From Azolla caroliniana (lineage: Eukaryota; Plantae; Polypodiophyta), in assembly GCA_043228905.1 (NCBI GenBank), contig JBHGNT010000001.1:6634001-6698000 (forward strand): a DNA stretch of 64,000 bases, read 5' to 3'. Positions 7,037-62,200 of the stretch are shown here, in pieces. The position numbers were made by a program, and so were the translations under genes. The notes under the pieces were generated by a model. It worked only from the letters and a program-made list of their open reading frames with translations, did no database searches and was not told where the DNA came from. Each line of letters starts with the position of its first letter. Position 1 is the stretch's first letter.

Positions 7037-10000
7037 TCTCAAACCATGACATTGGACGTTCAACTTCTTCTTTATTTCAACAATCTTCAATGTAAGCAAG
7101 CAAATTAATGTTTAACATATGGACAAAATTTTAGAAAAATAAATTATAAATCATCTATTTCTAAAAATGACCAAAAATTATGTTTGCAGATAGAACCAAA
7201 GAGGCATACACATCCAGTTACAAACCATGTATATACAAATTGGGATGAAACAATTGTTTTTGTGATATCTCGTTGTATATTCACTCATTGTAAATACCAT
7301 TATGATATTGAAAAGGAATTGCTTCTATTGTCCTATCAATTCTCCGTGTTAATATCTTGTAGTGGTTATACATTACCATGATCCCTCATTCCTAATCTTC
7401 TTTTGTATTACCTACGTTGTGCAATGTGTGCATCATAGATCATGGACAAGAAGGATGTAGAGTAGAAGGTTTAGATGTAGGACATTTCTAGGGCTTTGGG
7501 GTTTTCCACTCCTTGAATACATCTCAACACCATTGTAATTGATATCTTGAAGCATATAATTTTGAGGCTCTCCCTCGATGACCAAGTTGCTAGTTGGTGT
7601 AATTAGTTATATGTCGGCCTATCAACCATATTTGATGTGGTCTGGCACCACCTTCTTACGCAAGTTTGATAGGAACTTATTCATGCAAGAGGTCTACAAC
7701 CTCTTTTACATGATGTACCAACTTTCTCACCAAAGTTGCCCTAATCCCTTGTTCCATTCAAGTCACAATTGTGCCCGCTATTGCCCAGATGAAGGGGGTT
7801 GACTTGAAGGTGATTATGAAGTCGAGGATCAATCAACCTCTCATCACTTATTATTAAGTACATGGCATACATTGTGCTTCCCATGCTTTTCTAATGACAT
7901 CACTTTGGGGTTGGTACCAAAGGGATAACTCTAGCAATAAGGGGGCAATAGAAAAAAAAGTAGAAATGCAAATATTTATTGGTTAGTACAAGTAGCTTTT
8001 AGGGTTCTTTTGAGTTTCTTATTCTTTTAATCACTTTTGAGGTAGAGCGTTGACCTATCTCTCTCTCACTCTCTTTGGTGAAAACACACAATTATATTAA
8101 TAAATGTGTGTAAAAAACACTACTTACAATGGGTGCGACAATGGAGTATGGTCACTCACTAAATACATTACATGGGTAGTGGAACATGTTGAATTGCCGA
8201 AAGGCAAGACGAACACTCCCCCGAGGAAAGAATTTCCACTTGCTCCAATAAAGAAAATTGCCACATTAGTACTCCCTTCAACTTTTGTTGATATGCTTTC
8301 ACTCCATGTCTACCATTGAATACAAAAGTGTTGCGCATATTCCAATTATGACGCAATCCCCAATATCTCAGAAATAGAAATATCCCCAATTATGACGCAA
8401 TCCCTAAACCCTAAACCCTAAACCTGTGTAAATTGTGCAAACACCCACTGTCTAGGTGTCAAATAACACTATGATAAGACTTGCCAAATAACTCCAAATT
8501 TGACAAGCAATCAGACATTGTATAAATCGATGAGTAATATCTTCCATTTGAACAGTGCAAAAAATGCAATTACCCGTTGCTAATCCACAACGCTTTAGAG
8601 CTAATCCCAAAGGCTCCAATCAAAACTGTCCAAATGAAGACCTTTGCTACAAGTGGCAACTTAGAATGCCAATTACGTTGTAAGATCTGCCACCACCCAT
8701 GATCATATTTGTGTATTCTCCATTCTTCTTCAACCTTAGATGATAACCATCCAAGAGACTCAACAGAGCAATGATACAAAAGATTAGTAGTCACTTGTAA
8801 CAAAGATGTTTGACCCTTTAAACACCAATCAATCTACGGTCGTTCTCCTGTTTGTAGAGGTAAGAGACCTTGCATCAATGGAATATTTTGTTATAGTTGT
8901 TGCCAAATAAACCCATAATTAGCCGGAATGCGTAATAATTGTCGTGCTTCAACAAACTCCAAAACTCTTTGAGATGAAGCCTCAATTGTATCTCCCACCT
9001 CTTTGACCCCCAAACGAAACAAACGATTAAATTGAGAGTGCAATCTCTCCTTTCCCAGGCAACATAATAACCGAGAAGATACAAGCAACCATTTTTGCAA
9101 AGAATTACAATGCTCTCTACTATATGATGGTTTCCATACACATAACAAGAGTGCTTCTTGCCATGAGGTAACCAAGTGTTGAACACATGTAGAGTCCGGA
9201 ATCCTAATTGAAATACATTCATTCAGTAATTGCCACCATGAAGCCTTAATCGTTGTCCTTCCATTTGTTAAACCCTTGTTCTCAATGAAATATTCAACAA
9301 TAGATATCCATGTTTGTGAGTTTGAACACATGTCTTATAATAATGAAAATCTATAAGCCATCATATGCTTAGATAAGTTCAATATTCCAGTTCCCTCCAA
9401 GCGCTTGGGAGTTGCTAGATGATTCCACACAACCCAAGTGATTCCCATCTTATCCCTCTTCTTCCACAACAAATATTGAAGAGGTTGCAAAATAGAATGC
9501 AAAGCCTTCTTTGTCCATGGCAACAATGGCAAGTAATATAATATCATGGGTTCCATAATACATTGTACAACCTTCAAGCGTACATGAATGGTCAAGATTG
9601 TGACTTCCAATACATGAACTTATCCCTCAATTTACTAGACATCCATTCAATCAATTGACCATTTGTAACATTCATTCCTAATTGATAGCTGCCCAAGTGT
9701 CGAAAAATAGAGCTTTTTTTTACCATAGATCCTTGTCATCCAAAACATTCCAAATCCCTTTCAGTACATAATATGAGACTAGACTTCCTCCAATTAATAT
9801 GTAATCCGAAAAGCCAATGCAAATTGGTTCCATACAAGCATCCCCTTCTCAAGATTCTCTCGTGAGGCTTGTAGAAACATAAAAGAATCATCAACCAAAG
9901 CTTGTGCTACTAGTTGCCCTCTAGATGGAAGGTGTAGACCCACAATGTCACCATTTGTTGCAAGCCCTTGATAACATCACTAACAAGGGATGAGTAATAA

Positions 10001-13814: not shown

Positions 13815-16800
13815 GTTTGAACCAATTGTTCATTTCTCCCTCTTCCAACAAGTTCGGTTCTTTCTTCTCCTCTCCCCTCGTAAGTTATGGAGTCCCTGAG
13901 CAAACAGGAATACATGCGTGTTCTTTCTCAGCTCGATATGCTCACGAATAAATTTGTGGCATTAGAGCATGAAAATCAAAGGCTACTAGCGACCTACAAC
14001 AAGTGAGTACTGAAAAAGCTCAACAATGTAAAGAGTTATCACAACGGTTTCATCAACTCGAGGCTACTATATTGTCATTACGAGAACAAGCGTTGGGGGC
14101 TCAAAACTCCCCGAACCAAAGATTAGCCTCCCTGCCAAGTTTGATGGTACGAGGTCTTTATTTCGAGGCTTCTTGAATCAAGTCTGTTTGGTTATTCAGT
14201 TACATCCCAATCGGTACCCAACTGATGCTGCTCGTGTGGGATTAGTGGGAACCTTGCTATGTGGTACAACATTAGCATGGTTTGCACCACTTCTCGAGAA
14301 GAAATCACCGTTGCTGGAGGATTTTGAGGCATTTGTTAAGGAGTTTCAAGCTCCTTTCGGAGACACCGACAACACTAGGACGATGATAAACATGATTCGA
14401 AGGCTTCGCCAAGGAGATCGTCCCATGTTAGCTTACGTAGCTGATTTCCGTCTTTTGGCATGCGATATCCCTTGGGATGAGGCGGCCTTAATGGATCAAT
14501 TCCGTCAAGGTTTGCGTAATGATGTCAACGATCTTCTTCTTACTTTCCATGAAGATTCGAAATCTCTAACATAGGCCATTAGTCGAGCCGTGCGATGTGA
14601 TAATCGCCTATTTGAGTGACACTCTGAGCGCCAACAAATGTTACGTCGCCAACTGGAAGAGACGTATGCTTCTGTAGTTGGAACGCGTCCACAAGTTTCC
14701 AGACCCATTACAAGGGATGGCCCAACTCCAATGGAAATAGAGACAACACAACATCGAGGGTCTTTATCAGATGCTGAGAAGCAACGATGTCGAGTGCACC
14801 GCCTATGCCAATATCGTGGAGTTCCATTGTTACTTCTAATAACATAAATAAGCCTAATAGTCCATGCCATGAGAATAGATTTGATCTCTGGATTCAATTA
14901 GAGGATGTGTTAAACGAGTAAGTCTGGCCAAAATAGGAGCCATTTGGTTGGACCATCCTAGATATGTAGAGTCAAGTGAGTAGAGTTTTTTCTGCACAAG
15001 TTGAGCTTACCACATCTACATGTCATCAAGTCCTAGCCTCTGCCCTCTTAGATTTTGGAGCAAACTCTTGTTTCATGGATCTTGAATTTGCACTGTCACA
15101 AAACATCCGTTTGAATAAGCTCCCGAACCTAGTAGCCATAGGAATCATTGATGGTCATCCCATAGCATCAGATGATATAGTCGAGGAGTCTGAGCCAATT
15201 CGTATAGTTCTTGGCAATTTGGCAAGCATAATCTCTTTCAACGTTATTCGCAGTCCGGAACACCCAATCGTTCTAGGTCTCCCTTGGTTTGAACTCCATA
15301 ACCCGAAGATTGATTGGATGAAAAGGACAATTGAGGAGACCCAGGGAGAAAGAACAAAGGTCGCATCCCTCAACTCTCTGACATTTGATACTAGATCCCA
15401 TAAGTTATCTACTATCTCTTTACGCCAGTTACGCGAGGAAGGGGGAACCGAGGATATGTTCGTATTTGCAATAGTAGCAACTCTGCCATCTAGGAAATAC
15501 AAAGAGAAATACAAAGAGTTCTCTGACGTCTTTGATAAGGTGAAGGCCAATACATTGCCAAAGCATCGGCCATATGATTGCCCTATTGACTTACAACCAG
15601 GGAAAGAACCTCAATGGGGCCCAATTTATAATCTCTCCCCTATAGAGCTAGAGACTTTGCGGGAATATATTGACGAGAATCTCACAAATGGATTCATTCG
15701 ACATTCTAGATCACCTGTTGGTGCACCTATCTTCTTCGTTAAGAAAAAGAATGGGTCTCTTCGGTTGGTCGTGGATTATCAAGGGTTAAACGAAGTGACC
15801 ATTTGGAATAAATATGCTCTACCGTTAATCCCGAATCTTTTGGAATGTCTTAGTGGAGCAAAATATTTCATGAATTTGGACCTTCGTGGTGCATATAATC
15901 TAGTTCGGATTCGTCCGGGAGATGAATGGAAGATTGCTTTTCGCACTCGCTATGGACATTTCAAGTATACTGTAATGCCATTCGGTCTCATGAGTGCACC
16001 TACAGTTTTCCAGCATATGGCGAATGATATTTTTTGAGATTTTCTCGATATTCTCACTATAGTTTACCTAGATGACATTTTTTATTACTCGAAGACCTAC
16101 GAGGAGCATGATGAACATGTTCGTCAAGTACTAGGTCGACTATGAGAATACGGTCTCTACGCAAAATTAGAAAAGTGTAGTTTCGGCCAGAATCAAGTGG
16201 AATTTTTGGGGTATGTTGTATCATCAGATGGTATTTCTCTGGACCCCATGAAGTTTCAAGCAATTTTAGAGTGGCAAACGCCTGTTTCAGTTTGCAAACT
16301 TTTATCGGAAATTTATTAAAAATTATTCTAAGGTCGTGCTTCCGCTCACTCAACTCACACACAAAAATCAACCATTCATATGGAATTTAGATGCAACCAA
16401 GGGATTTGAAAGTTTAAAACATGCGTTTACAATGACACCTATTTTAGCACATGTCGACCCAACAAAACACTTCATCCTTGAAGCTGATGCATCCGATTTT
16501 GCATCAGGAAGTGTCCTATCACAGACTGGAGATGACGGAGAGCTACACCATGTCCCTTTCCCGAAAGTTTGAAGCTACAAAGATCAACTACAAGATCCAT
16601 GACAAAGAACTTCTTGCAATCGTGGATTCCTTTCAACAATGGCTCTTCTCAGCAGATCATTGTCTACAATGATCATAAGAACTTGGCATATTTTCAAAAT
16701 GCTCAAGTTTTAAGTCGTCCCACTTCGACTTTGTAATCATATATCGCCCTGGGATGCTGCAAGGCAAAGTAGATGCGCTTTCTCGACGCTCTTATATGAA

Positions 16801-18283
16801 ACTTCATCCAGGGGAACTTGTGTTTGAGCATCAAAAACAAATCCTTTTGGGTCCTAATCACCGATGATTAATGGTAGTTAATGCCATAACAACACTTGAA
16901 GATTCCACTCTTCTTGATTCCATTCAAGGTCATATGGCCACTGATAAATTCACCAAGGATGTTTTGGATCATATTGTCCCAGATCGTGCTTCTTGGTCGC
17001 AGTTGAAAAACCCTCGTGATGATTATCGTCAATTCTATTGGCATGGTGGTTTTCTATTTCGACAAACCTATTGTATGTTCCTGATGGTCCCCCGCGACTA
17101 CAAGTTTTACCATGACTCACCAATGGCTGGACATTTTGGAGTACGCAAAACTCTAGAATTAATTCATTTTGTTGAGGAGTATGTTCACAATTGTGATACA
17201 TGTTGTCGATCAAAGAGTTCTCAACACCAATCCTATGGCTTACTACAACCACAATTGTGATACATGTTGTCGAATATCCTTGGATTTTATTACCGATCTC
17301 CCAGTTTCAAAAGGTTATGATGCAATTCTCACAGTGGTTGATCGACTTACCAAAATGGCACATTTCTTGCCATGTACGAAGTCTCTTACTAGTCAAGAGG
17401 CGGTCAATCTAGTTATGCGTGAGGTGTTTAAGCACCATGGTCTTCCAGATGATGTTATTAGTGATCGGGGTCCACAATTTATCTCAAACTTTTGGAAGCA
17501 CATACTCAAACTTCTCCAAATTTAGGGTTATCATCCTGAGACTAATTGCCAAACGGAGCGTACCAACTAGACATTGGCGCAATATCTTCGTTGTTTCATC
17601 AACTACCAACAAGATGATTGGGTTGATTTTTTGCATTTGGCTGAATTTGCTTACAACAACTTGGTCCATTCTTGTACGGGATATTCCCCATTTTTTGCAA
17701 ATACAGGCCGTCATCCTTGGTGGACAATGAATGCGCATCCAGAACGGTTTACCAAACCTATTGCTGAGGATCGTGAATCGCCTCCAAGAAATTCACGCTA
17801 CCATTCTTCACAACCTGCATGATGCTCAAAGTACACACAAGAGGCTTGTGGATCCTCATCGCCTAGATTCCTCCAAAATATTCTATGTTGGGGATCGTGT
17901 ATGGCTTCTCCAACACAACATCAAGACTACTCGGCCTTGCAGTAAATTGGATTACCAACGTTTTGGCCCATACATGATCATTGGTAAGATAAGTGATGTT
18001 GCATTTCGTCTTGGCCTCCCTCCGCATATTCGTCTTCATCCGACGTTTCATGTATCCCTTTTGGACCCTTACACCACAAGTTCAATTCCGAATGTGCGCA
18101 ACAAGTTGTATTACTTGGTTGATTGGGTACGCTATACCCCCAACGATCGAACTTAGGAACTTGCAACAAATCTTTCCAATGTCGCGGACATGGTCACCAC
18201 ATTTCATCGCGACTATCCTCATAAATCGGGTCCTACTACAAGCCCTACGACTCGTGAGATGTGTTGTCGAAGAAGGGGGATAG

Positions 18284-19156: not shown

Positions 19157-20189
19157 GGAAATATAGGCAAATAGGGACATGTGACCTATGAGACTAACCC
19201 TCGCCTTTTACAACTATGCTTTTGGAATTGCAATGGATACCCATGGAATGCGGGATTTGGCATAAAGGAGTTCATCGATGACTTAGATATCACACTTCTT
19301 GTTGAAACATGGGAGCATGATACTCAAAGGTTTCAAGGTTTAGGAAACTATAATGTACACTCTTTGATATGGAAGAAAAATCCAAGACAAAGAAGAGGAC
19401 AAGGAGGGGTGGCATGTTTGATTAAATCGGAAATAGAGAAATATGTGTCAATCATAAAAAATGATGAACATAAATGTTGCATATGGCTTAAAATAGAAAC
19501 ACCTAATGATTTGCCCACTTTTGTAGTTGGATGTTACATTCCTCATCAAGATTCTAACTTTTATGCTTGTTTGGATAAAGATCAACCTTTTGCCAATCTA
19601 GAAGATGATATTACTTATTTCAAATCCAAAGGGGAAGTTATTGTCTTTGGTGACATGAATGCTCGTACAAGAAATTTCCAACTTGATTCACAAGAATCTT
19701 TCATGCCACATATTTCAAGGATGCAAGAGGATATGTAAATGTATAGCCACTCTTCTAGCGATGAAAAATATCCGAACCAATTTGGGAAGTTACTCCTACA
19801 AATGTGCAATAGTACTGGATTGCTTATTGCAAATGTTATTTTCTTATGGCCCAACACTAATGGTTTTACATGTAGAAAACACAACGGAAATAGTGTGATT
19901 GACTATGTGCTACTTTCCGAAGGTATTTTCGATCAGATACATAAATTCTCACTTGGCGAATGGACATTGGAATCCGATCATAGGACTTTATGTATTGATC
20001 TCAAATGTATGCATAAGTTTGATTGTGAGCAGGCTATTGAAGATAATAAACAACCACACTTGAGCATGAACCTTAAGCGAACGCCCATGTATTCCAAGAT
20101 GGTTGAGGATATTATGTTACAAATGACAAAGATACAACATAGTGCCACACTAGAATGCAAATGGGAAGCTTTCAAGAAATGTTTCTCGA

Positions 20190-20308
20190 CCAACCGCACA
20201 TCTTGTGAGTTTTAGACTGTGAGGTCGATTCAAGGCGTGCAAGTGGTATACAATCGGTGGGTGGGTGTATGTGAGGGAGAATGAGAGTGAAAGAAGAGAA
20301 ATGTGAGT

Positions 20309-20343
<35 letters not shown>

Positions 20344-21752
20344 TGTGTGTGTGTGTGCGCGTGCGAGTGTGTGTGAGTGTTCAAATTTGATGATGTGGGA
20401 GGTATGGGGGTTGATATATTTGGTGTGGGATAAAAGATTTTATGGGCTTATTTGAAAACAAGTAGGGGAGTGTGAGAGAGAAAGAGAGAGGCCGGGTAGA
20501 AGAGAAGTGATGTGAAATTTTAGAAGTCAAGAGAGGAGAGGGATGAAATGACAATTTAGATAAGAAAAAGGGAAGGGGAGGAGGAAAAATAAGGTTTTAA
20601 GGGGGGAGGGGCATATTGAGATTAGAAGTAGAAGGGGGAAGGGTAGAGCGAAAAATTGGAAAAGTAAGGGGAGGGATAGGAGTATAAAGTGAGGGGTAGA
20701 TTTAAATAAAAAAGGAAAAGTAAAAGCGAGGGGGAAGGAAGGGTATTAGGATAGACTAGAGAAATAGGAACAAACAAGAAATAAGGAGAGGGGTAGGAGG
20801 ATGCTAAAATAATGAAAAGTGAGAGGTGGAGTTTAAAATAAGAAAAAGCGAGGGGAGGGTATGGTGAGAATTACTTAAAAGTACGAGAGGGGTAGAATTG
20901 AAAAATAGGAAACAATAAAAGATGAGGGGAGGGGTAGGATTAGAAAATAGGAATAAAGAGAATGAGGGGAAGATGCTAAAAATAAAATAAAAGGTGAGGG
21001 GTAGAATTGGAAAATAGGAGAAATAGAATTAGGAGGATGCTAAAAGTGAAAATGAGAGGGGTAGAGTTAAAAATAAGGAAAAGTGAGGGGAAGGGTATCA
21101 TGAAAATATTGGAAAGGTAGGGAATGGGTAGAGTTGAAAATAGGTAAGGGTATGATGAGAATTGGGTAAAAATAAAAGAGGGGTAGAGTTAATATAGAGA
21201 GAGACTATGGGGGAAGGATATCATACTAGAGAAAGTGAGTGGGATGGAGAGTGATGTAAGGTATATTGGTTACAACGGAAGGGTAGAACATGTGTTGAAT
21301 ACAAATGCCGGCTACAATGTAGTCCCGCGCATTGGAAAGGAAATACTAAGATTATGCAAAATGCTGACTATCGAAAGTAGTCCCATGCATACATACTAAA
21401 AGAGACAAAAGGGAATGCATGGCTACCGAATGTAGTCCCATGCTTACAATGAAAAGATGTAAGGAAGTGAGAGATAGGATGTTGAAGGCGTGTATGGGAT
21501 GTCGATGATGCCGATGTTGTTGTTGCAAAAGCCTTCCACTTGAAATGAGGGAACTCGACACGAAGTGGATACTCGAGGGGTGTCGATAATATGCCATCAT
21601 GGGTTCACTTCTCCTGTGGATGGTCCTCCATAGAATTTCCTACAACTTGTGAGTTTTAGACCATGAGGTCGATTCAAGGAGTGCAAGCGGTATACAATCA
21701 ATGGGTGGGTGTATGTGAGGGAGAATGAGAGTGAAAGAAGAGAAATGTGAGT

Positions 21753-21820
<68 letters not shown>

Positions 21821-22225
21821 CACTAAAAACTAATTCATATTAACAAACTTAAAAGGTAATACAAAGGAATGGTCGATGTGGCAAACTAGTTTCGCTCTTA
21901 AAGAGCTCATCAGTGCACATGACCATGTAGAATTTGAGGGGTTTATATAGGGGAGATAAGGGGGGGGAAGGAGAGAGAGAATGTGTGTGTGAGTGTGAGT
22001 GTTCAAATTTGATGGTGTGGGAGGTATGGGGGTTGATATATTTGGTGTGGGATAAAGAGAGAGGAAGGGTAGAAGAGAAGTGTGTGATGTGGGAGTTAGG
22101 GAGGGTGAAGTATATTGGTGTGTATGAAAAGATTGTATGGAGAAACTTAGGAAAAAATGTTTTGATAAAGAATGTCGTGAAGCTTGAAAGTGTCTTATGG
22201 TTTTGGATGTAGTTAAGGATAAAGA
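20190..22225 (-). mobile_element. Non-coding, partially tandem-duplicated hammerhead-bearing element (candidate retrozyme or non-autonomous Penelope-like element) inserted in the LINE
   Basis: Direct repeats at ~20203-20435 and ~21647-22060 (offset ~1444 nt). The right copy has an extra ~160 bp between AG tracts that contains the ribozyme. The middle is strongly purine-skewed. LINE coding sequence stops at ~20185 and resumes at ~22225. Boundaries are approximate. Confidence 0.65.
21869..21926 (-). ncRNA. Type I minimal hammerhead ribozyme
   Basis: Minus strand: AUGGUC-AUGUG-CA [CUGAUGA] GCUCU-UUA-AGAGC [GAAA] C-UA-G U U / UG-C-CACAU-C-GACCAU. Complete catalytic core, 5-bp stem II, palindromic minimal stem III (ACUAGU), and 13-bp stem I with two single C bulges. 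Predicted cleavage after GUU (between 21884 and 21883). Confidence 0.85.
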
Positions 22226-25200
22226 GAATTACCAAAAGCATTTGCATGAGTATAAAAGGCTTATTAAAAGAAAGAGAAGAATATGGGAAGTTACTCAACA
22301 ATTCATCCAAACGTAAGAGAAAGCACATGCATGTGCTAAATTTTGGGGAAATCTAAAGGGGAAACATTTTGAGAGTTATGGTAACTTAACTCTTCACGAC
22401 TTGTCTATGCATTGTAAGAATTTATATGAGTTATCTCTTGCCAGAAAGATGATGTGTTATGGTTCTCTTTCACATATGTCTCGCTTCTTTACAATTGAAG
22501 ATATATGCATAGGACTTAATAAATTGGCATCATGAAAGGCAAGCGATCTTCAATGTATAAAGGCTGAAATGCTCAAATGGACAGGAAAGGAAGCACATGT
22601 ATGGATAAGCGATATATTTAATGATGCATTGCAACATGGTATGTCGTACGATTGGACTACAAATTGGATCAAACCTTTACATAAAGGGGGAGATGTAAAT
22701 AATGTAAACAACTATTGAACCATCATGGTTGGCTCATTAATGGCAAAACTATTTCGATGTATAATGGAATCAAAGATAAGTGTATGGGCTGAAAAAAATG
22801 GTAAGAGAGCTTATGGACAAGCTGGCTTTCGAAAACACCATAGCACCATTGATCACCTTGTCACCCTTCGAGTATTAATGGAGGAAAGTCGCCTTAGAGG
22901 TAAAGGTTTATATTGTTGCTTTGTAGACTTCAAGAAAGCTTTTGATATGGTACCTTGTGAGCATCTTTGGAGGCGAATGGAAGAACTTGAGGTGCCAAGT
23001 GAATATATGCTTGCAATTTCCCGAATTTATGAGAAGGTTATATGTTGTGTGCGTATGAGAGATAACCTTTTAGATTTCTTCAAAAGCATTATTGGTGTTA
23101 AGCAAGGATGCCCACTCTCACCAACACTATTTGGTCTATGAATTGATGAATTGGAAGAAATGGTTACCAAGTTTGCAAAGGAAGAATGTGTTGAAGAAGT
23201 TGCCATTAGGAATGTTGTGATTATGCTTTTGCTATATGCAGATGATGTAGTGCTTTTTGCAAATACTTTAGGAGATACACAAAAGCTTATGAAGGCATTG
23301 GAAATTTTTTACGTGCATACTAAATTAAGTGTCAAAAGCTCTAAAACAAAGATTATGCTTGTGAAGAGCCAGAAAAGAGATAAACCATGCATTATGTATA
23401 ACAATGAGCCACTTCAATGTGTGGAAAGCTTCAAATATCTTGGCCTTGAAGTTCCTTCAAATCATAGATGGAATGAATGTGTTACACGCCGCTTAGAGGC
23501 GAGTAAGCGAGCCTACTATGCATTTGAGAACACATGCAATCTTGGAGATATTAAGTGTTGGGTCCTCAAGAAATATCTTTTCGACACTTTGGTGACACCA
23601 GTTCTTCTCTATGGGGTGGAAGTATGGGGTGGTAGTATCCCTAAATCTATGTGGAAAGAGTTTGAAAATGTCCAAAAACATTTCCTTACAAAGTTTCTAC
23701 AAGTTAAGAAACAAACGCCCTACACCCTTTTCCTCATTGAGACGGGATCGCTTCCCATTGAGATCATGGCCATAGAAAGGGTTGTTGAATACATGCTTAA
23801 GGTTCACAAAAGTCCCTCACATCCACTTCCTAGAATTGCATGGGAAGCAAGCAAAAAGATCCAAAAGACACATAAAAGCAAAATTTTGTGTTCCGGTTGG
23901 ATCCAAGATATAGAAAAATAGTTTGGTAGATGGGATGCGAGACACTTGCTTCATGATGCATCACTAGATTCCTTTGTAAATGAGGCCTTTTTGCAACACC
24001 AATGTATCATGACATGGGACAAACGTGGAGGCTCACACTTCACACATTATACTACACATGTTGCACCTAACTACAAAACCATATTCTTTGCGGAACGGGG
24101 AAACCGTACACATCTATACATGTTAGAGCCAATACCGTTATCTGCCATTCGAACCATTGCGTCCATGCAACTTAGCTCACATGCATTGCAATGTGAGACA
24201 GGGCGTTGGGGCACAAGTGATGAGAGTGGTCGGCTATGCACAATTTGTCGTTTGGTCCTGTAGCCTTATATTGGCCATTTTGCATATCTATTTCTCTCTC
24301 TCTCTCTCTCTAAACAAGTTTGCGAGTCTAAGTATCACACTTTGATACAATGCTCTGCCTTTGATCATATTCAACCATGCTTTCCACATCTCTTTGATCA
24401 AACCTAATCCTTGTGTGAATTCCTCTCACAACCACAATGTGCACTCTCGATTGCAACATTCATTGGTAAAGTTCTTGAACATCGAGAGTCACTACTCACT
24501 TTCACATGTATCACGTGAAATGTAATCTTTTTGGTCTCATAGGTCATATTTGACCTCCGAAGATGATAATATAATCTATCTATCTATCTTTGGTGTCATG
24601 TGATAGTAATACTCATTTTGATTATAACTTATAATGACATATTTTGATTCAATCATTAGTTGTGAGATGAGAATGAGCTCATCATCAATACAATTATGTT
24701 TTTGAATTATTTGATTTTTATGTTCATGCTTTCTAATGTTTAGTAGTTAAGGAATTCGTCAGTTTTGAACTTTCAATTGTGTTGACATTTGATTCAATCA
24801 ATATATAATATAGACCATAGTCATTTTTTAAAATTCCAACTTATAAATCCAATCCAACTTTCAGATTGATTTACCATACACGTTTGATTGAATCATTCTC
24901 GAACGTGAATTCACGTATGGTGCATATGATTCAAAATTGATACCCACGCAAAGGGCACAAGAAAATTTATCCAACAATTGAGCCCACTTGTCTTGTGTCC
25001 ACTATAAAGAGATCCTAAATTGCATGCTTGTCCAATGAAAACATTGACCAAAATCACCTATTTCCAAGCTGCACTAATACTCCCCCCTACACAAGGCACA
25101 TTTACATTCACAACAAAGTTTTCCCATTTGCATGGTTTAGGTGCTTTCCTGACTAGAATTTGCTTCTCGCGTTCTGTTTGTTGTTTATTTTTACTTGTTT

Positions 25201-58699: not shown

Positions 58700-59238
58700 C
58701 ACCAACACGAAAAGCGAGAAGGAAAGAGATAGAATCGTAACACTTAATTATAATGGCAAGATATTATAATCCATGACAGTTACAACCGACGTGGCGGCGA
58801 CGGACCCGACACGGGGACCCTACTCACGCACACCGACAACAGTCACCCGACTCCAAGAAACAAAGGGGGAAAAGGGTGCGACTCTGTTGGAAGCACACGG
58901 GCTGTCCATGAAGCAGAGGCAGCGTCCTCCCACAGGCGGCGACGGACCCCACAGAGAACGACGGCTCCAGGAGTAGAGATAGAGCTCGGCTTCTCTTCTG
59001 TAGCAGCGCTTTCTTTCTTTCTTTCTCCCTCGCGCGCGATATCCTTTTCTTTCTCCTCTTGCCTTTTATTCCATGTCCCCCTTTGGGATACGCACAATCC
59101 CCTCTAATAAATGCGTGTGGCTTAGTAGTCACATCCACCAGTTCGCGTACAAAGTATCTAGTCACGCGTCCATCCGTGTAGGGGCCGGTTTACGCGCTTT
59201 CTCTCCGATTCCGCCTATGGCCGGTTTTCTTCACGACA
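58573..59238 (-). repeat. 3' LTR (666 bp) containing an (AG)n tract
   Basis: Bounded by TGTCGCG (58573) and CACGACA (59238), adjacent to the PPT. (AG)n at ~58642-58696. Flanking 5-mer AACGG is the candidate TSD. Confidence 0.88.
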
Positions 59239-62200
59239 TCCACCCCCACCAAACCGCGCATCCACTGGTATGCGCCAGAGACGGGTAGACATCGAAGAAA
59301 CCCGGCCTCACTTGTTGCTCTCCGTTTCTCCGCCGGACCCGAACTGATCGTCATTGTCACTCCCGCTCGCAGGCTCCGGCTCGTCTTTCGAACCGCTTTT
59401 TGAAAGCTTTGATCCGCTTTCCGGCCACTGGCACCGCTAACCGTGTCCCGTCAAGTTCCGCGAGGTGGTACGTGTCGTTGCCGTTCGCGCTCGTCACCAT
59501 GTAGGGCCCGAACCATCTCCTAGCAAACTCTCGCACCGCCTTGTGCTGATTGTCGAGGCTGCTGTCGTATACCAAGACCCAATCGCCTTCCTCGATCTTC
59601 TTTGGTCGCAACTGGTGCGTCCGGTTGAACCGGGTCTTGTTACGCTCCCTCGCTGCTCGCAGCTTTTCCTTCGCCTGTATCACGTCCTCCGGCCTCCGCT
59701 TGAGTTGCCGAATCCGCGCCGCCAGCAACTCCACCCGGCTCATTTCGTCCTTCCAATCTACCGCCGCCCACGAAGAAACCGTCCGTTCCACCGGCATGAT
59801 CGGCTTTTGTCCGTACATTAGATCCGCCGGCATAAACCCTGTCAATGAACTGTGCGTAGTCCGGTCCGCCCATAGTGCATAAGGAAGGAGTCGCGGCCAA
59901 TTCCCAACCTGCCCACCGCATGCACGCACCAACGCCTTTACAATCAGTCCGTGCCCACGTTCCACCTTTCCGTTCGCCTCCGGATTGTACGCTGTGGCGA
60001 GGGAGAGTTTGACGCCTAGCCGATCGAATAGCTCCTCGGCCTCCTGCGCATCTAGCTCTCCCTGGTCCGCCACGATCCTCCCGACGCACCCGTATCGACA
60101 CACTACTTCTTCGATCAGGAACCGGCATACCGCCGCGGTTGTCTTGCTTTGCAGTGCATGGCCTTCCACCTGGTTTGTTAAGTCTTCCCGTGCAAGCACC
60201 AGGTATCGCATCTGTCCTACCCCCATCGGCATCGTCACCAAGTCCACCATCCACTTGAAATGGACCGTAGGCGGGTAGGTCGGGTGTAGCTCGTCCCGGT
60301 GTCGGACTATGGAGTGCATCTAACAGCTCTCGCAAGTCGTTATGAACCGATGCACGTCCTGGTACAACCCCGCCACCAGTACTTCTCCTTCAGCTTCTTG
60401 AAAGTGGCCCACGTTCCGCGGTGTCCGGCCCAGGGGCTCTCGTGAAATGCCATCAGTAGTTTCCCCTGTTTTTCTTTCTTTGCCACTACTCAGAGTGGAA
60501 TGCCGCTTCTCTTCTTTGGGTGCCTCCATATGCACCCGTCTTGCAGGAAGAATCGGTACGCCTTCCTCCGTATTCGGCTCGCCTCCTCTCTCGCCCATAC
60601 TGCGTCCGACGTCATCGTCCGTAGGAACCTCCCGATTTGGAGCCACTCCCCATCGTACCTACTTTCGTCAAATTCGTTAAGCGCCGGAGTGTTCCCTTTC
60701 CTCGTCGTTACGTTAGCCGACCCAAAGAAGTCCTCGCCGACTTCTTCGTCTTCCGAAACCATGTCGTCTTCGTCGTTGAACCTTGCCCTCGAAAGCATGT
60801 TGGCCATGGCGTTGTCCTTTCCAGAGATGTGCCGTATCTGCGGGTTCAAGGACTTAATGTACGCTATCCACCGGAGCATTGCTAGGTCCGGCGTCGCGCA
60901 TCCGGAAACCATGCCGAGTATCGGCAGGCAGTCCATCTCGATAATCACCTCTGTCCCGATCAGATAATCCTTGTCGGCCTTGACCGCCGAAACGACACCC
61001 CAAAGCTCGCGCTTAATTTGGGCGTACCCTCACTGCCGCTCGCTCAATACCTTCGCCCCGAACCGGATTGGGAATCGTGCGCCGCCCTTGCCCTCCTGAT
61101 TGATTACCCACCCGATCCCGGTCGGGCTGGTGTCCACCGTTACGCAGATGGGAACATCCTTGCCGTAGACCGCTTTACGGAGAGCCGGCGCTGCCGTAAG
61201 CGCCTCCTTTAGTCTCCGAACCGACTCCGTGTGCTCCGTCCTCCATTCAAAGCTACGCCCCTTTTTCAATAGTCTGTAGAGGGGTTCTGCGACATGTGCG
61301 TAGTGCGGGATCCAGATATGGTAGAACGTGCATGCCCCCAAGAATCTGCGGACCTCCGTGACCGACCCGCAAACGTTCCTCATCGCGGAGATGGCCTCTA
61401 CCTTTGCTGGAGACGGTTTTCTACCGTAAGGCCTGCACAGGTGCTCGACCACCAAGATTTCCGGCTATCCGAAGGCCGACTTTTCCTCGGAGAAGGTGAG
61501 CCTCGCGCGCTCTAGTCTCTGCAGCACCTTCTCGCAGTCATCGATGTGGGACGCCACGAAATTCCGACATCCGTCCGGCCCGATTGCCTCGTCCCTTTTT
61601 TCCACCGGGCATCCCTTGATCGGGATGTCGTCTAAGAACGGCATGGTGATGTCCGGGATACAATCCCTGAGCACTTTGTTCATCGCGTTCACCATGTGAG
61701 CCACTGAGTTCGTCCCTCCTTGTGGCAGGGTACACATTCGCACTAGGCCGAGAGGAGTCCGCATCGTCGTAATGTCTCTGCTCTCCACGGCTAGTTGGAA
61801 CTGATCGTACCCCGAGTACAGATCACCGACAGAATAGATCGACCTTCCAGCGAAGGCCTCCGCGAACTCATCTATGGTCGGTCCGATCCCTGCATTACGA
61901 ATGGTCACCTTGTTGACCGGTTGTAGGTCCTGGATGAAGCACAACATGCCTTTCCTCTTCGGCACCGTAAACCACCGATTCGAATACGGGGCACTCGACG
62001 GTTCGAGGATGCCCATCTCCACCTTTTGCTTTAGGAGCTCCATCAACTTCGGGATGTGAGCTCTTGGCACCGGAATCGGCTTGAGATTCCATGGTACATG
62101 CGGTACCGTGAAGATCACCATCGGTTCGACAACTATCGGGTCTACGCACCCGATCTCCTCTGGTGTGAATGCAAAAGCCTTCCCGTGCCTTCCGAGCATT

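Follow-up and report, generated by a model that had tools for sequence, protein, structure and literature searches.

A probable fossil, non-autonomous Penelope-like element with a type I hammerhead ribozyme inside a LINE of Azolla caroliniana

In a stretch of 64,000 nucleotides of the Azolla caroliniana genome (GCA_043228905.1, contig JBHGNT010000001.1, positions 6,634,001 to 6,698,000 of the forward strand; hereafter the window, to which all unprefixed coordinates refer), a long interspersed nuclear element (LINE) is interrupted by an insert of ~1.93 kb. We read this insert as the fossil of a non-autonomous Penelope-like element (PLE) of the plant, devoid of open reading frames (ORFs), of the endonuclease-less kind and lying on the window minus strand, and we put the probability of this reading at roughly 80%. 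A first-pass annotation of the window had named the segment a candidate new retrozyme or non-autonomous Penelope-like element. The second of these names fits what we found, namely a pseudo-long terminal repeat (pLTR) with a hammerhead ribozyme, dispersed relatives, and reverse transcriptase (RT) partners that share the repeat.

The insert and its target site

The host LINE is on the plus strand, degenerate and riddled with stops, and purine-rich non-coding DNA lies between its two domains (Pfam Exo_endo_phos at 19181–20215 and RVT_1 at 22725–23921). These domains, together with uninterrupted paralogues, bear out the earlier suggestion that the insert separates the apurinic endonuclease (APE) and RT parts of the LINE. 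A profile-free search with the LINE piece left of the insert against 1.84 billion protein representatives returned many short ORF fragments from paralogous LINEs, and one of these, P0053, is continuous across the insertion point (..KWEAFKKVISHAQTNVFRPTTYWKYNNKFSSKKKWFDKECHETRKCLISLDVVKDKENYQKHLHEYKRLI..). The contig carrying P0053 (L001) and a second contig (L002) are 85–89% identical to the window LINE and both are without the insert, which contradicts the alternative that the segment is present in all members of the LINE family. Aligning the window to these uninterrupted copies, as the first-pass annotation had advised, defined the target site. LINE sequence extends to 20205 in the alignment (window ..CACATCTTG, ..ACCGCACATCTTG; L002 ..ACCACACATCTTGGAAATA) and resumes at ~22138–22140 with TGGAGAAAC..TTAGG..AAAAAATGTTTTGATAAAGAATGTC, the KKCFDKEC stretch, with BLAST support from 22151. 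The insert thus runs from ~20206 to 22137–22140, with the window minus strand as its sense strand; the borders first assigned to it, 20190–22225, were wrong, and 22141–22225 is LINE.

At the left border there is a 4-nt ambiguity, since CTTG at 20202–20205 is common to the LINE and to the terminal CAAG of the element. The right border is ambiguous within 22127–22150, with 22137–22140 as the best estimate; here the microhomology is TGG, common to the LINE and to a block of the element that we call x (tatggg, ~20441–20446). The junction flanks, ..CACATCTTG and (TG)GAGAAAC, leave room for a target site duplication (TSD) of at most 2 nt (TG), and none longer than that was found at the junctions in comparison with the paralogous uninterrupted LINEs, in agreement with the earlier report of no TSD. 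The target therefore appears to be neither deleted nor duplicated, save for TG at most. We also observed that the window LINE lacks 24 nt at 20179/20180 (VISHAQTN in L001 and L002), 26 nt upstream of the insertion point.

Repeat finding and self-BLAST confirmed the duplicated blocks that had been noticed in the left and right parts of the insert, as direct repeats at 20198–20341/21642–21785 (95% over 144 nt), 20361–20434/21983–22056 (95% over 74 nt) and 20481–20515/22054–22087 (91%), with an additional diverged B-like block at 22085–22140. Read in the sense direction, the insert opens with a 5'-truncated partial unit, in which the A/B repeats and a CT tract precede the TATA box and the type I hammerhead, and (CT)n and the C block come after them. 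The complete unit that follows runs from the 5' leader through the CT-rich repeats and the A/B repeats to its C block and stops at the 3' terminus of the family, ..CTCACAAG. The motif GTCTAAAACTCACAAG at 21661–21646, with TTGTAGGAAATTC after it, is the internal unit-to-unit junction. The TATA box and the hammerhead lie in a segment of ~171 bp (21812–21982) that is present in the right copy only. Its limits are (AG)31 and a short AG/GT tract, and at the corresponding place of the left copy (AG)15 is joined to (GT)n. On the sense strand the segment is bracketed by the (CT)31 tract and a short CT tract at ~21969–21979. The earlier description of a ribozyme and a TATA-like sequence confined to the right copy between AG tracts was thus accurate. 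By contrast, the unit length of 1.45–1.6 kb given with it does not hold for the family: the spacing of the B blocks is 1622 nt and the units of relatives measure 1.68–1.79 kb, the 1444-nt spacing of the other repeats being due to the deletion of the hammerhead segment. The ORFs above 40 aa in the insert gave no Pfam match even at E = 1, and a homologous-protein search with two element-internal reading frames was without match, consistent with the first impression that no credible ORF is present.

The hammerhead ribozyme and its TATA box

A single hammerhead motif lies on the minus strand of the insert (core 21913–21889, whole motif 21926–21869), and its core positions are all canonical. The 5' strand of helix I, AUGGUCAUGUGCA (21926–21914), and its 3' strand, UGCCACAUCGACCAU (21883–21869), enclose CUGAUGA (21913–21907), helix II (GCUCU/UUA/AGAGC, 21906–21894), GAAA (21893–21890) and a helix III of the form C-UA-G, which has 2 bp (counting A15.1–U16.1) and sits inside an 8-nt palindrome, AACUAGUU. 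The motif is type I, its open helix being helix I, and the cut is predicted after U 21884.

Rfam gave no match at its gathering thresholds, and at an E-value threshold only the type III model responded, at 19.9 bits (gathering score 48.5), aligning the motif only via deletion of helix I elements. Since this model is unfit for a minimal type I variant, we turned to covariation and to a descriptor scan backed by simulations. The descriptor combined the core with a helix II of 4 bp or more, the closing pair of helix III and UH, and the simulations were scored for a helix I of at least 6 pairs. The motif occurs once in the window, with a helix I of 13 pairs and 2 bulges. Among 600 first-order Markov simulations of the 64-kb window, 6 contained the core with helices II and III, and 0 had a helix I of at least 6 pairs. 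RNAfold gave the motif −20 kcal/mol (z = −2.9).

Metagenome contigs were scanned once with the pattern CTGATGAG-N(9-14)-CGAAACTAGTT, which yielded 101 loci, 53 of them with BLAST similarity to the insert. The related loci provided 24 distinct hammerhead variants. The search pattern left the covarying helix II positions and all of helix I free and fixed the core and helix III, so that the invariance of the latter two is uninformative. The third pair of helix II (24–37) is U-A in 17/24 variants, C-G in 7/24 and broken in none, and in stems of 5 bp the fifth pair is C-G, U-A or U-G; in the window it is U-A and in the closest relatives C-G, a double change. Over helix II as a whole, 95.8% of cells are paired, compared with 29–43% when the partners are slid, and the covariation score exceeds those of all 500 shuffles. 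The distal part of helix I alternates between GGUC/GACC, GACC/GGUC and GGCC/GGCC and varies in length with pairing kept, to be read together with a mix-and-match control in which 47% of cross pairs also formed at least 6 bp, most variants sharing GGUC/GACC-like arms. A covariance model built from the related sequences scored the window motif at 68.7 bits as its sole match in the window and detected no second hammerhead there, intact or decayed. The hammerhead that had been pointed out in the insert is therefore one intact motif, beyond chance in simulations and covarying in relatives.

The TATA-like sequence that the first-pass annotation had placed near the ribozyme (CTATATAAA) corresponds to a box at 21949–21942 on the minus strand that is conserved in relatives. 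In the window and the related loci (L003–L103), the 70 nt preceding the core were searched for TATA[TA]A[TA]A. The box was present in 32/38 distinct related upstream regions, and in 30/38 it stood 36–39 nt before CUGAUGA; only 2/40 unrelated pattern matches had one. The stretch between box and ribozyme is variable among the related loci. Transcription starting ~30 nt downstream of the TATA box would begin within the 5' strand of helix I.

Dispersed relatives and autonomous partners

Seven contigs (L070, L088, L093, L053, L089, L076 and L014) are collinear with the insert at 82–90% identity over 0.7–1.3 kb, so the alternative of a unique local duplication with no dispersed relatives does not apply. 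They carry the TATA–hammerhead module, which likewise disposes of the alternative that homologues are ordinary long terminal repeats (LTRs) lacking the ribozyme. All relatives come from one ENA assembly series, the ERZ10343xx–44xx metagenomes. L089 has two hammerheads 1,755 nt apart, the unit length judged from repeated landmarks is 1,684 nt in L076 and 1,793 nt in L014, and the A/B region is a variable-copy repeat among the relatives.

The two ends of the copies behave differently. At the 3' end the window reads ..CTCACAAG|ATGTGCGG, with the element ending ..GTCTAAAACTCACAAG and LINE beyond, and L076 reads ..CTCACAAA|ATCAGTTC, with the element ending ..GTCTAGAACTCACAAA and then unrelated DNA; internal unit junctions are of the form ..CTCACAA(G/T)|TTGTAG, the next unit opening with TTGTAG(G/T)AA. 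The window and L076 ends match and thus define one 3' terminus common to two independent copies. The 5' starts vary: the window copy begins among the A/B repeats, L076 at ~50 nt past the cleavage site, L093 in (CA)n at the end of B, and L088 in CT-rich repeats. The flanks of these four copies are unrelated to one another. Both bounded copies exceed one unit (window 1.93 kb, ~1.2 units; L076 1.86 kb, ~1.1 units), and copies overall are 1.1–1.3-mers. A fixed 3' end, variable 5' truncation and more than one unit of length is the insertion pattern of PLEs (PMC8557442), and the window copy and its relatives indeed show a partial head-to-tail tandem with a fixed 3' end and varied 5' truncation. The hammerhead is inside the pLTR, though in just one of the two repeats of the window copy.

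Many longer contigs of the same assembly series carry, on the hammerhead strand, an ORF1 of ~750–900 aa and an ORF2 of ~657–662 aa that overlaps ORF1 by a few codons. In L065 and L069 such autonomous elements stand in tandem with a hammerhead between units, and the ~5.4-kb spacing in L065 is the unit length. Second, partly mutated hammerheads were seen in tandem autonomous copies at L015:5749–5809 and L065:9497–9558. In two other contigs (L066:5200–10469 and L090:674–5943) the autonomous PLE is head to head with a full LINE, which has a 480-aa ORF1 followed by a 1278-aa ORF2 (Exo_endo_phos, RVT_1, zf-RVT).

Comparison of the insert with L066, L017, L069 and L080 revealed homology in two places only. 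One covers the TATA box and hammerhead, with 70–81% identity from ~55 nt upstream of the hammerhead through the ribozyme; the other covers the 3' end and 5' leader, with 68% identity over a stretch that begins in the C block, spans the 3' terminus and takes in the first ~145 nt of the next unit. This second stretch contains the conserved blocks CGCACTCCTTG..CGAC..GGTC, TCTATGGAGG, GGAG....GAACCCA, GAGTTCCCTC and TTTGCA. The ATG within TCTATGGAGG is where ORF1 of the autonomous elements is called to begin (MEGSSLEHGTHDG..); its window counterpart (21631–21629) runs into a stop after 8 codons, with GAACCCA.GATGG and GAGTTCCCTC retained. The rest of the leader, the CT-rich 34/67-nt repeats and the A/B repeats are without counterpart in the autonomous elements. 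Sharing of only the ends and the promoter–ribozyme module, with the rest unrelated, makes the element an internal-deletion or replacement derivative; retained ends and promoter module are what one usually finds in a non-autonomous element that parasitises an autonomous one.

As for the proteins, ORF2 gave a weak Pfam match to RVT_1 (23.9 bits) and no other domain, and no match among PDB sequences; ORF1 had no Pfam match and no usable Atlas match. In the large protein search, relatives of ORF2 carry PF28514, PF26215 and PF00078. Among relatives with a name, the nearest come from Cryptomeria japonica, Selaginella moellendorffii (LOC112343723, 39% identity) and Ginkgo; these uncharacterised proteins are 38–41% identical, 580–660 aa long and without PF01541 (GIY-YIG), a domain absent from all 40 nearest homologues of ORF2. 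From 28–32% identity down, animal proteins of 786–946 aa appear that have PF01541 in addition to these three domains, as canonical endonuclease-bearing PLEs do. The clusters neighbouring ORF2 in the Atlas share this domain set and come from rotifers, chordates and arthropods. By eye, ORF2 contains PSDKNMG, LPKLHK..FRPICS, FDVESLYPSIP, GTAMGS, RYIDDAF and LPFLD, which we take to be PLE RT motifs. A DKG motif has been named for PLE RTs (PMC8557442). We take ORF2 to encode a Penelope-type RT without a recognisable endonuclease. The insert thus has its termini in common with elements, found in metagenome contigs, that encode such an RT, and no GIY-YIG domain was recognised in the partner proteins. 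The first-pass annotation had imagined mobilisation by an unknown RT and proposed a search for partners with RT plus GIY-YIG sharing the repeat; a candidate partner with a Penelope-type RT is now identified in contigs that share the ends and the module, and it comes without the GIY-YIG domain.

The features of the insert and its host LINE are collected in Table 1. Within the leader, at 21309–21448, there are three hairpin-forming motifs spaced by ~55 nt (GGCTAC..GTAGTCCC). Just upstream of the LINE lies a degenerate Ty3/gypsy fragment (14976–18283, plus strand; RVT_1, rve, Tf2-1-like SH3). Elsewhere in the window, 59234–60076 is a repeat shared at 82% with L042:1969–2804; this contig has a PLE hammerhead as well, and its 398-aa frame over the repeat had no Pfam match. 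An interstitial telomere-type (CCCTAAA)3 at 8402–8422 has no hammerhead nearby by the covariance model.

Table 1. Features of the insert and the interrupted LINE (window coordinates).
Feature	Position	Strand	Support or remark
Host LINE, endonuclease part and linker to insertion point	19181–20205	+	Pfam Exo_endo_phos; paralogues
Whole insert, probable decayed ORF-less Penelope-like element, ~1.2 head-to-tail units	20206–22139	−	L001/L002; seven same-family contigs
Downstream (3') repeat, TATA–hammerhead segment deleted	20206–20515	−	Ends ..GTCTAAAACTCACAAG (20217–20202)
Blocks within the 3' repeat	A' 20481–20515; x 20435–20480; B' 20361–20434; (CA)n(CT)n 20312–20380; C' 20206–20341	−	
CT-rich degenerate tandem repeats, periods ~34 and ~67 nt	20516–21199	−	No similarity to autonomous elements
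5' leader of complete unit, with ORF1-start remnant and hairpin motifs	21200–21645	−	Alignment to autonomous elements
C block, ending with the family 3'-terminal motif GTCTAAAACTCACAAG (21661–21646)	21646–21755	−	
(CT)31 tract downstream of ribozyme	21756–21818	−	
Type I hammerhead ribozyme	21869–21926	−	Descriptor scan, simulations, covariation, covariance model
TATA box TATATAAA, 36 nt upstream of CUGAUGA	21942–21949	−	Recurs in relatives
5'-truncated start of upstream partial unit, A/B repeats	21983–22139	−	Repeats; variable-copy A/B region in relatives
Blocks within the upstream partial unit	Diverged B/x 22085–22139; A 22054–22087; B 21983–22056	−	
Host LINE resumed, linker KKCFDKECREA.. 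then RT	22140–24263	+	Pfam RVT_1; P0053/L001 alignment

Proposed history, alternative readings and known systems

A plausible history of the copy would be the following. The TATA box would drive transcription from inside the repeat, and the hammerhead would trim multimeric or read-through transcripts; with a 2-bp helix III inside the palindrome, cleavage is expected to be best as a dimer. The RNA would be copied in trans by an endonuclease-less PLE RT, the cDNA being primed on a free 3'-OH at a pre-existing break in the LINE that annealed through the 4-nt CTTG/CAAG to the 3' end of the RNA. Synthesis past one unit would produce the pLTR; the template would be an RNA with terminal redundancy or read-through, or else the RT would jump between templates. 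The other end would be joined at the 3-nt TGG microhomology, with neither duplication nor loss of the target. Later the 3' repeat would have lost its TATA–hammerhead segment, be it to slippage between the two CT tracts, to their recombination or to a jump of the RT from one to the other. As to the direction of the change, all relatives and autonomous elements carry the segment between two CT tracts, so that the left copy represents a loss between microsatellites, as had been supposed from the start. We also considered the segment as a secondary insertion into the right copy, and rejected this since it occupies the same place in all relatives and autonomous elements. The repeats are ~5% diverged and were presumably identical at birth, which makes the copy old, and it is probably inert.

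Several points weigh against the reading of the insert as an endonuclease-less PLE. The relatives are from metagenome assemblies and not from the window's own genome, and at no more than 90% identity they may stem from the same or a related species. The PLE assignment of ORF2 is built on domain sets, homologue lists and motifs picked by eye and not on a reference phylogeny, and an ORF1 without recognisable domains could hold an unrecognised nuclease. Endonuclease-less PLEs are described as mainly telomeric, and the window copy is interstitial and without a telomere-repeat complement. The empty site is taken from paralogues 85–89% identical and not from an orthologous allele, so the right border and the lack of a TSD are good to a few bases. 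Lastly, transcription, cleavage and trans-mobilisation are predictions from DNA sequence.

The nearest competitor is a retrozyme in the strict sense, in which cuts at successive hammerheads would release RNAs of ~1.6–1.8 kb that circularise and undergo rolling-circle reverse transcription. The two hammerheads of L089, the more than unit length of both fully bounded copies and the helix III palindrome, which favours cleavage of multimers, are all compatible with it, and animal non-LTR retrozymes have themselves been argued to be non-autonomous PLE derivatives (bioRxiv 10.64898/2026.07.22.740005; PMC7229834). However, the fixed 3' terminus is ~240 nt downstream of the cleavage site and not at it, which a linear RNA with a defined 3' end explains better, the unit is 4–10 times longer than those of animal retrozymes (~170–400 nt; PMC7229834), and the marks of plant LTR retrozymes, namely a type III hammerhead, a primer binding site (PBS), a polypurine tract (PPT) and a 4-bp TSD (PMC5680766), are all absent; we therefore regard this reading as unlikely. 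The candidate class of new retrozyme first offered for the insert is thus not supported, and newness was in any case overstated, as hammerhead-bearing endonuclease-less PLEs have been published for Selaginella (PMC4209133). A related proposal sees in the family a plant equivalent of the animal non-LTR retrozymes: dimer-dependent cuts in read-through or tandem transcripts would yield circles of ~1.6–1.8 kb, and the TATA spacing would put the start within helix I and thereby disable the promoter-proximal ribozyme. We hold this to be rather unlikely; if true, downstream ribozymes alone would cut, a built-in polarity switch, and in this family PLEs would have a living connection to plant retrozymes or viroid-like RNAs.

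Very unlikely, in our view, is that a double-strand break of the LINE was mended by microhomology-mediated templated synthesis, with a tandem PLE array elsewhere in the genome as the source of the filler DNA. Such an origin would account for the microhomology at both junctions (CTTG and TGG), the lack of both TSD and target loss, and a length beyond one unit, but a random patch would end anywhere, and the insert ends at the very 3' terminus of the independent copy L076. The direct repeats of ~0.3–0.5 kb around ~1.1 kb of non-coding DNA could also suggest a non-autonomous LTR-type element (TRIM- or SMART-like, or a pair of solo LTRs) or a local duplication, with a hammerhead-like motif arising by chance, for which one might cite the sub-threshold Rfam score. 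This is extremely unlikely given the outcome of the simulations, the covariation in relatives, and the fact that relatives and partners are tandem, PLE-type elements. Moreover, we found no PBS-like 12-mer at up to 3 mismatches in 20206–22139, no PPT adjoining the repeat, no TG..CA ends and no TSD, and on these grounds we rejected both an LTR element and a plant LTR retrozyme. A telomere-targeted element was likewise rejected: (CCCTAAA)2 does not occur in the insert even with 2 mismatches, there are no telomeric repeats beside the hammerhead, and the copy is inside the ORF2 of a LINE.

We thus return to the endonuclease-less PLE, and to what it would mean. Hammerhead PLEs are well studied in animals, and those of plants are documented essentially in Selaginella (endonuclease-less) and in conifers (endonuclease-bearing, horizontally acquired). 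Our literature search found no ORF-less families of this kind for ferns or non-seed plants beyond Selaginella. One plant lineage would harbour autonomous endonuclease-less PLEs beside at least one ORF-less parasite family that keeps the promoter–ribozyme–terminus module, and in the same lineage insertion would be interstitial, with microhomology and no target duplication. Worth recording are the conserved TATA-to-ribozyme spacing, which across diverged families would give a handle on the start site relative to the ribozyme, the interstitial TSD-less junctions and the retained ORF1 start. The system would allow one to ask how a nuclease-less RT integrates within chromosomes. It would also allow a test of the proposal that plant retrozymes originate from PLEs (PMC5680766), an origin now argued for vertebrates (bioRxiv 10.64898/2026.07.22.740005). 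For annotation, the practical advice is to class 1.5–2 kb purine/pyrimidine-skewed "non-coding repeats" of this sort as PLE derivatives.

Among known systems, the endonuclease-deficient PLEs of Selaginella moellendorffii carry canonical type I hammerheads in their pLTRs (Cervera and de la Peña, 2014, PMC4209133; also attributed to Gladyshev and Arkhipova, 2007, as cited there). The window element resembles them in its plant host, in a type I hammerhead with a short palindromic helix III in a pLTR, and in a partner RT of the Penelope type without GIY-YIG; it differs in being ORF-less and interstitial, without a telomere-repeat complement, and its partner RT is ~40% identical. Athena, Coprina and Terminons, in the account that PMC8557442 gives of them, attach to telomeric G-overhangs via reverse-complement telomeric repeats beside the hammerhead. 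As in Athena and Coprina, the partners lack an endonuclease domain, ORF1 precedes and overlaps the RT ORF, as in their frameshift layout, and the hammerhead is near the 3' end; unlike them, the window family is without telomeric repeats and its copy is inside a LINE. A related hammerhead family at L102:5476–5800 does have several CCCTAAA-like repeats directly downstream of the ribozyme. MRC1 and other non-autonomous Chlamys elements of Chlamydomonas are ORF-less, form pLTRs or head-to-tail copies, and are similar to autonomous families at their ends (PMC8557442). The window element shares the lack of ORFs, the pLTRs and the end-confined similarity; Chlamys elements, however, have an N-terminal endonuclease and are mostly without canonical hammerheads, whereas the window family keeps hammerhead and TATA box and its partners are endonuclease-less.

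Animal non-LTR retrozymes are monomers of ~170–400 nt in long tandem arrays with demonstrated circular RNAs (PMC7229834; bioRxiv 10.64898/2026.07.22.740005). In common with the window element they are non-coding, have a type I, often dimer-dependent hammerhead, are argued to derive from the pLTRs of PLEs and occur alongside autonomous PLEs; the window unit, in contrast, is 1.62 kb long (1.68–1.79 kb in relatives), its family forms 1.1–1.3-mers, and it is known from DNA. Plant LTR retrozymes, finally, rely on the machinery of Ty3/gypsy elements; their hammerheads are type III and their LTRs true ones, accompanied by a tRNA-Met PBS, a PPT and a TSD of 4 bp (PMC4918200; PMC5680766). The window element is like them a non-autonomous plant element with a hammerhead inside direct terminal repeats, and unlike them it is type I and has no true LTRs, PBS, PPT or 4-bp TSD.

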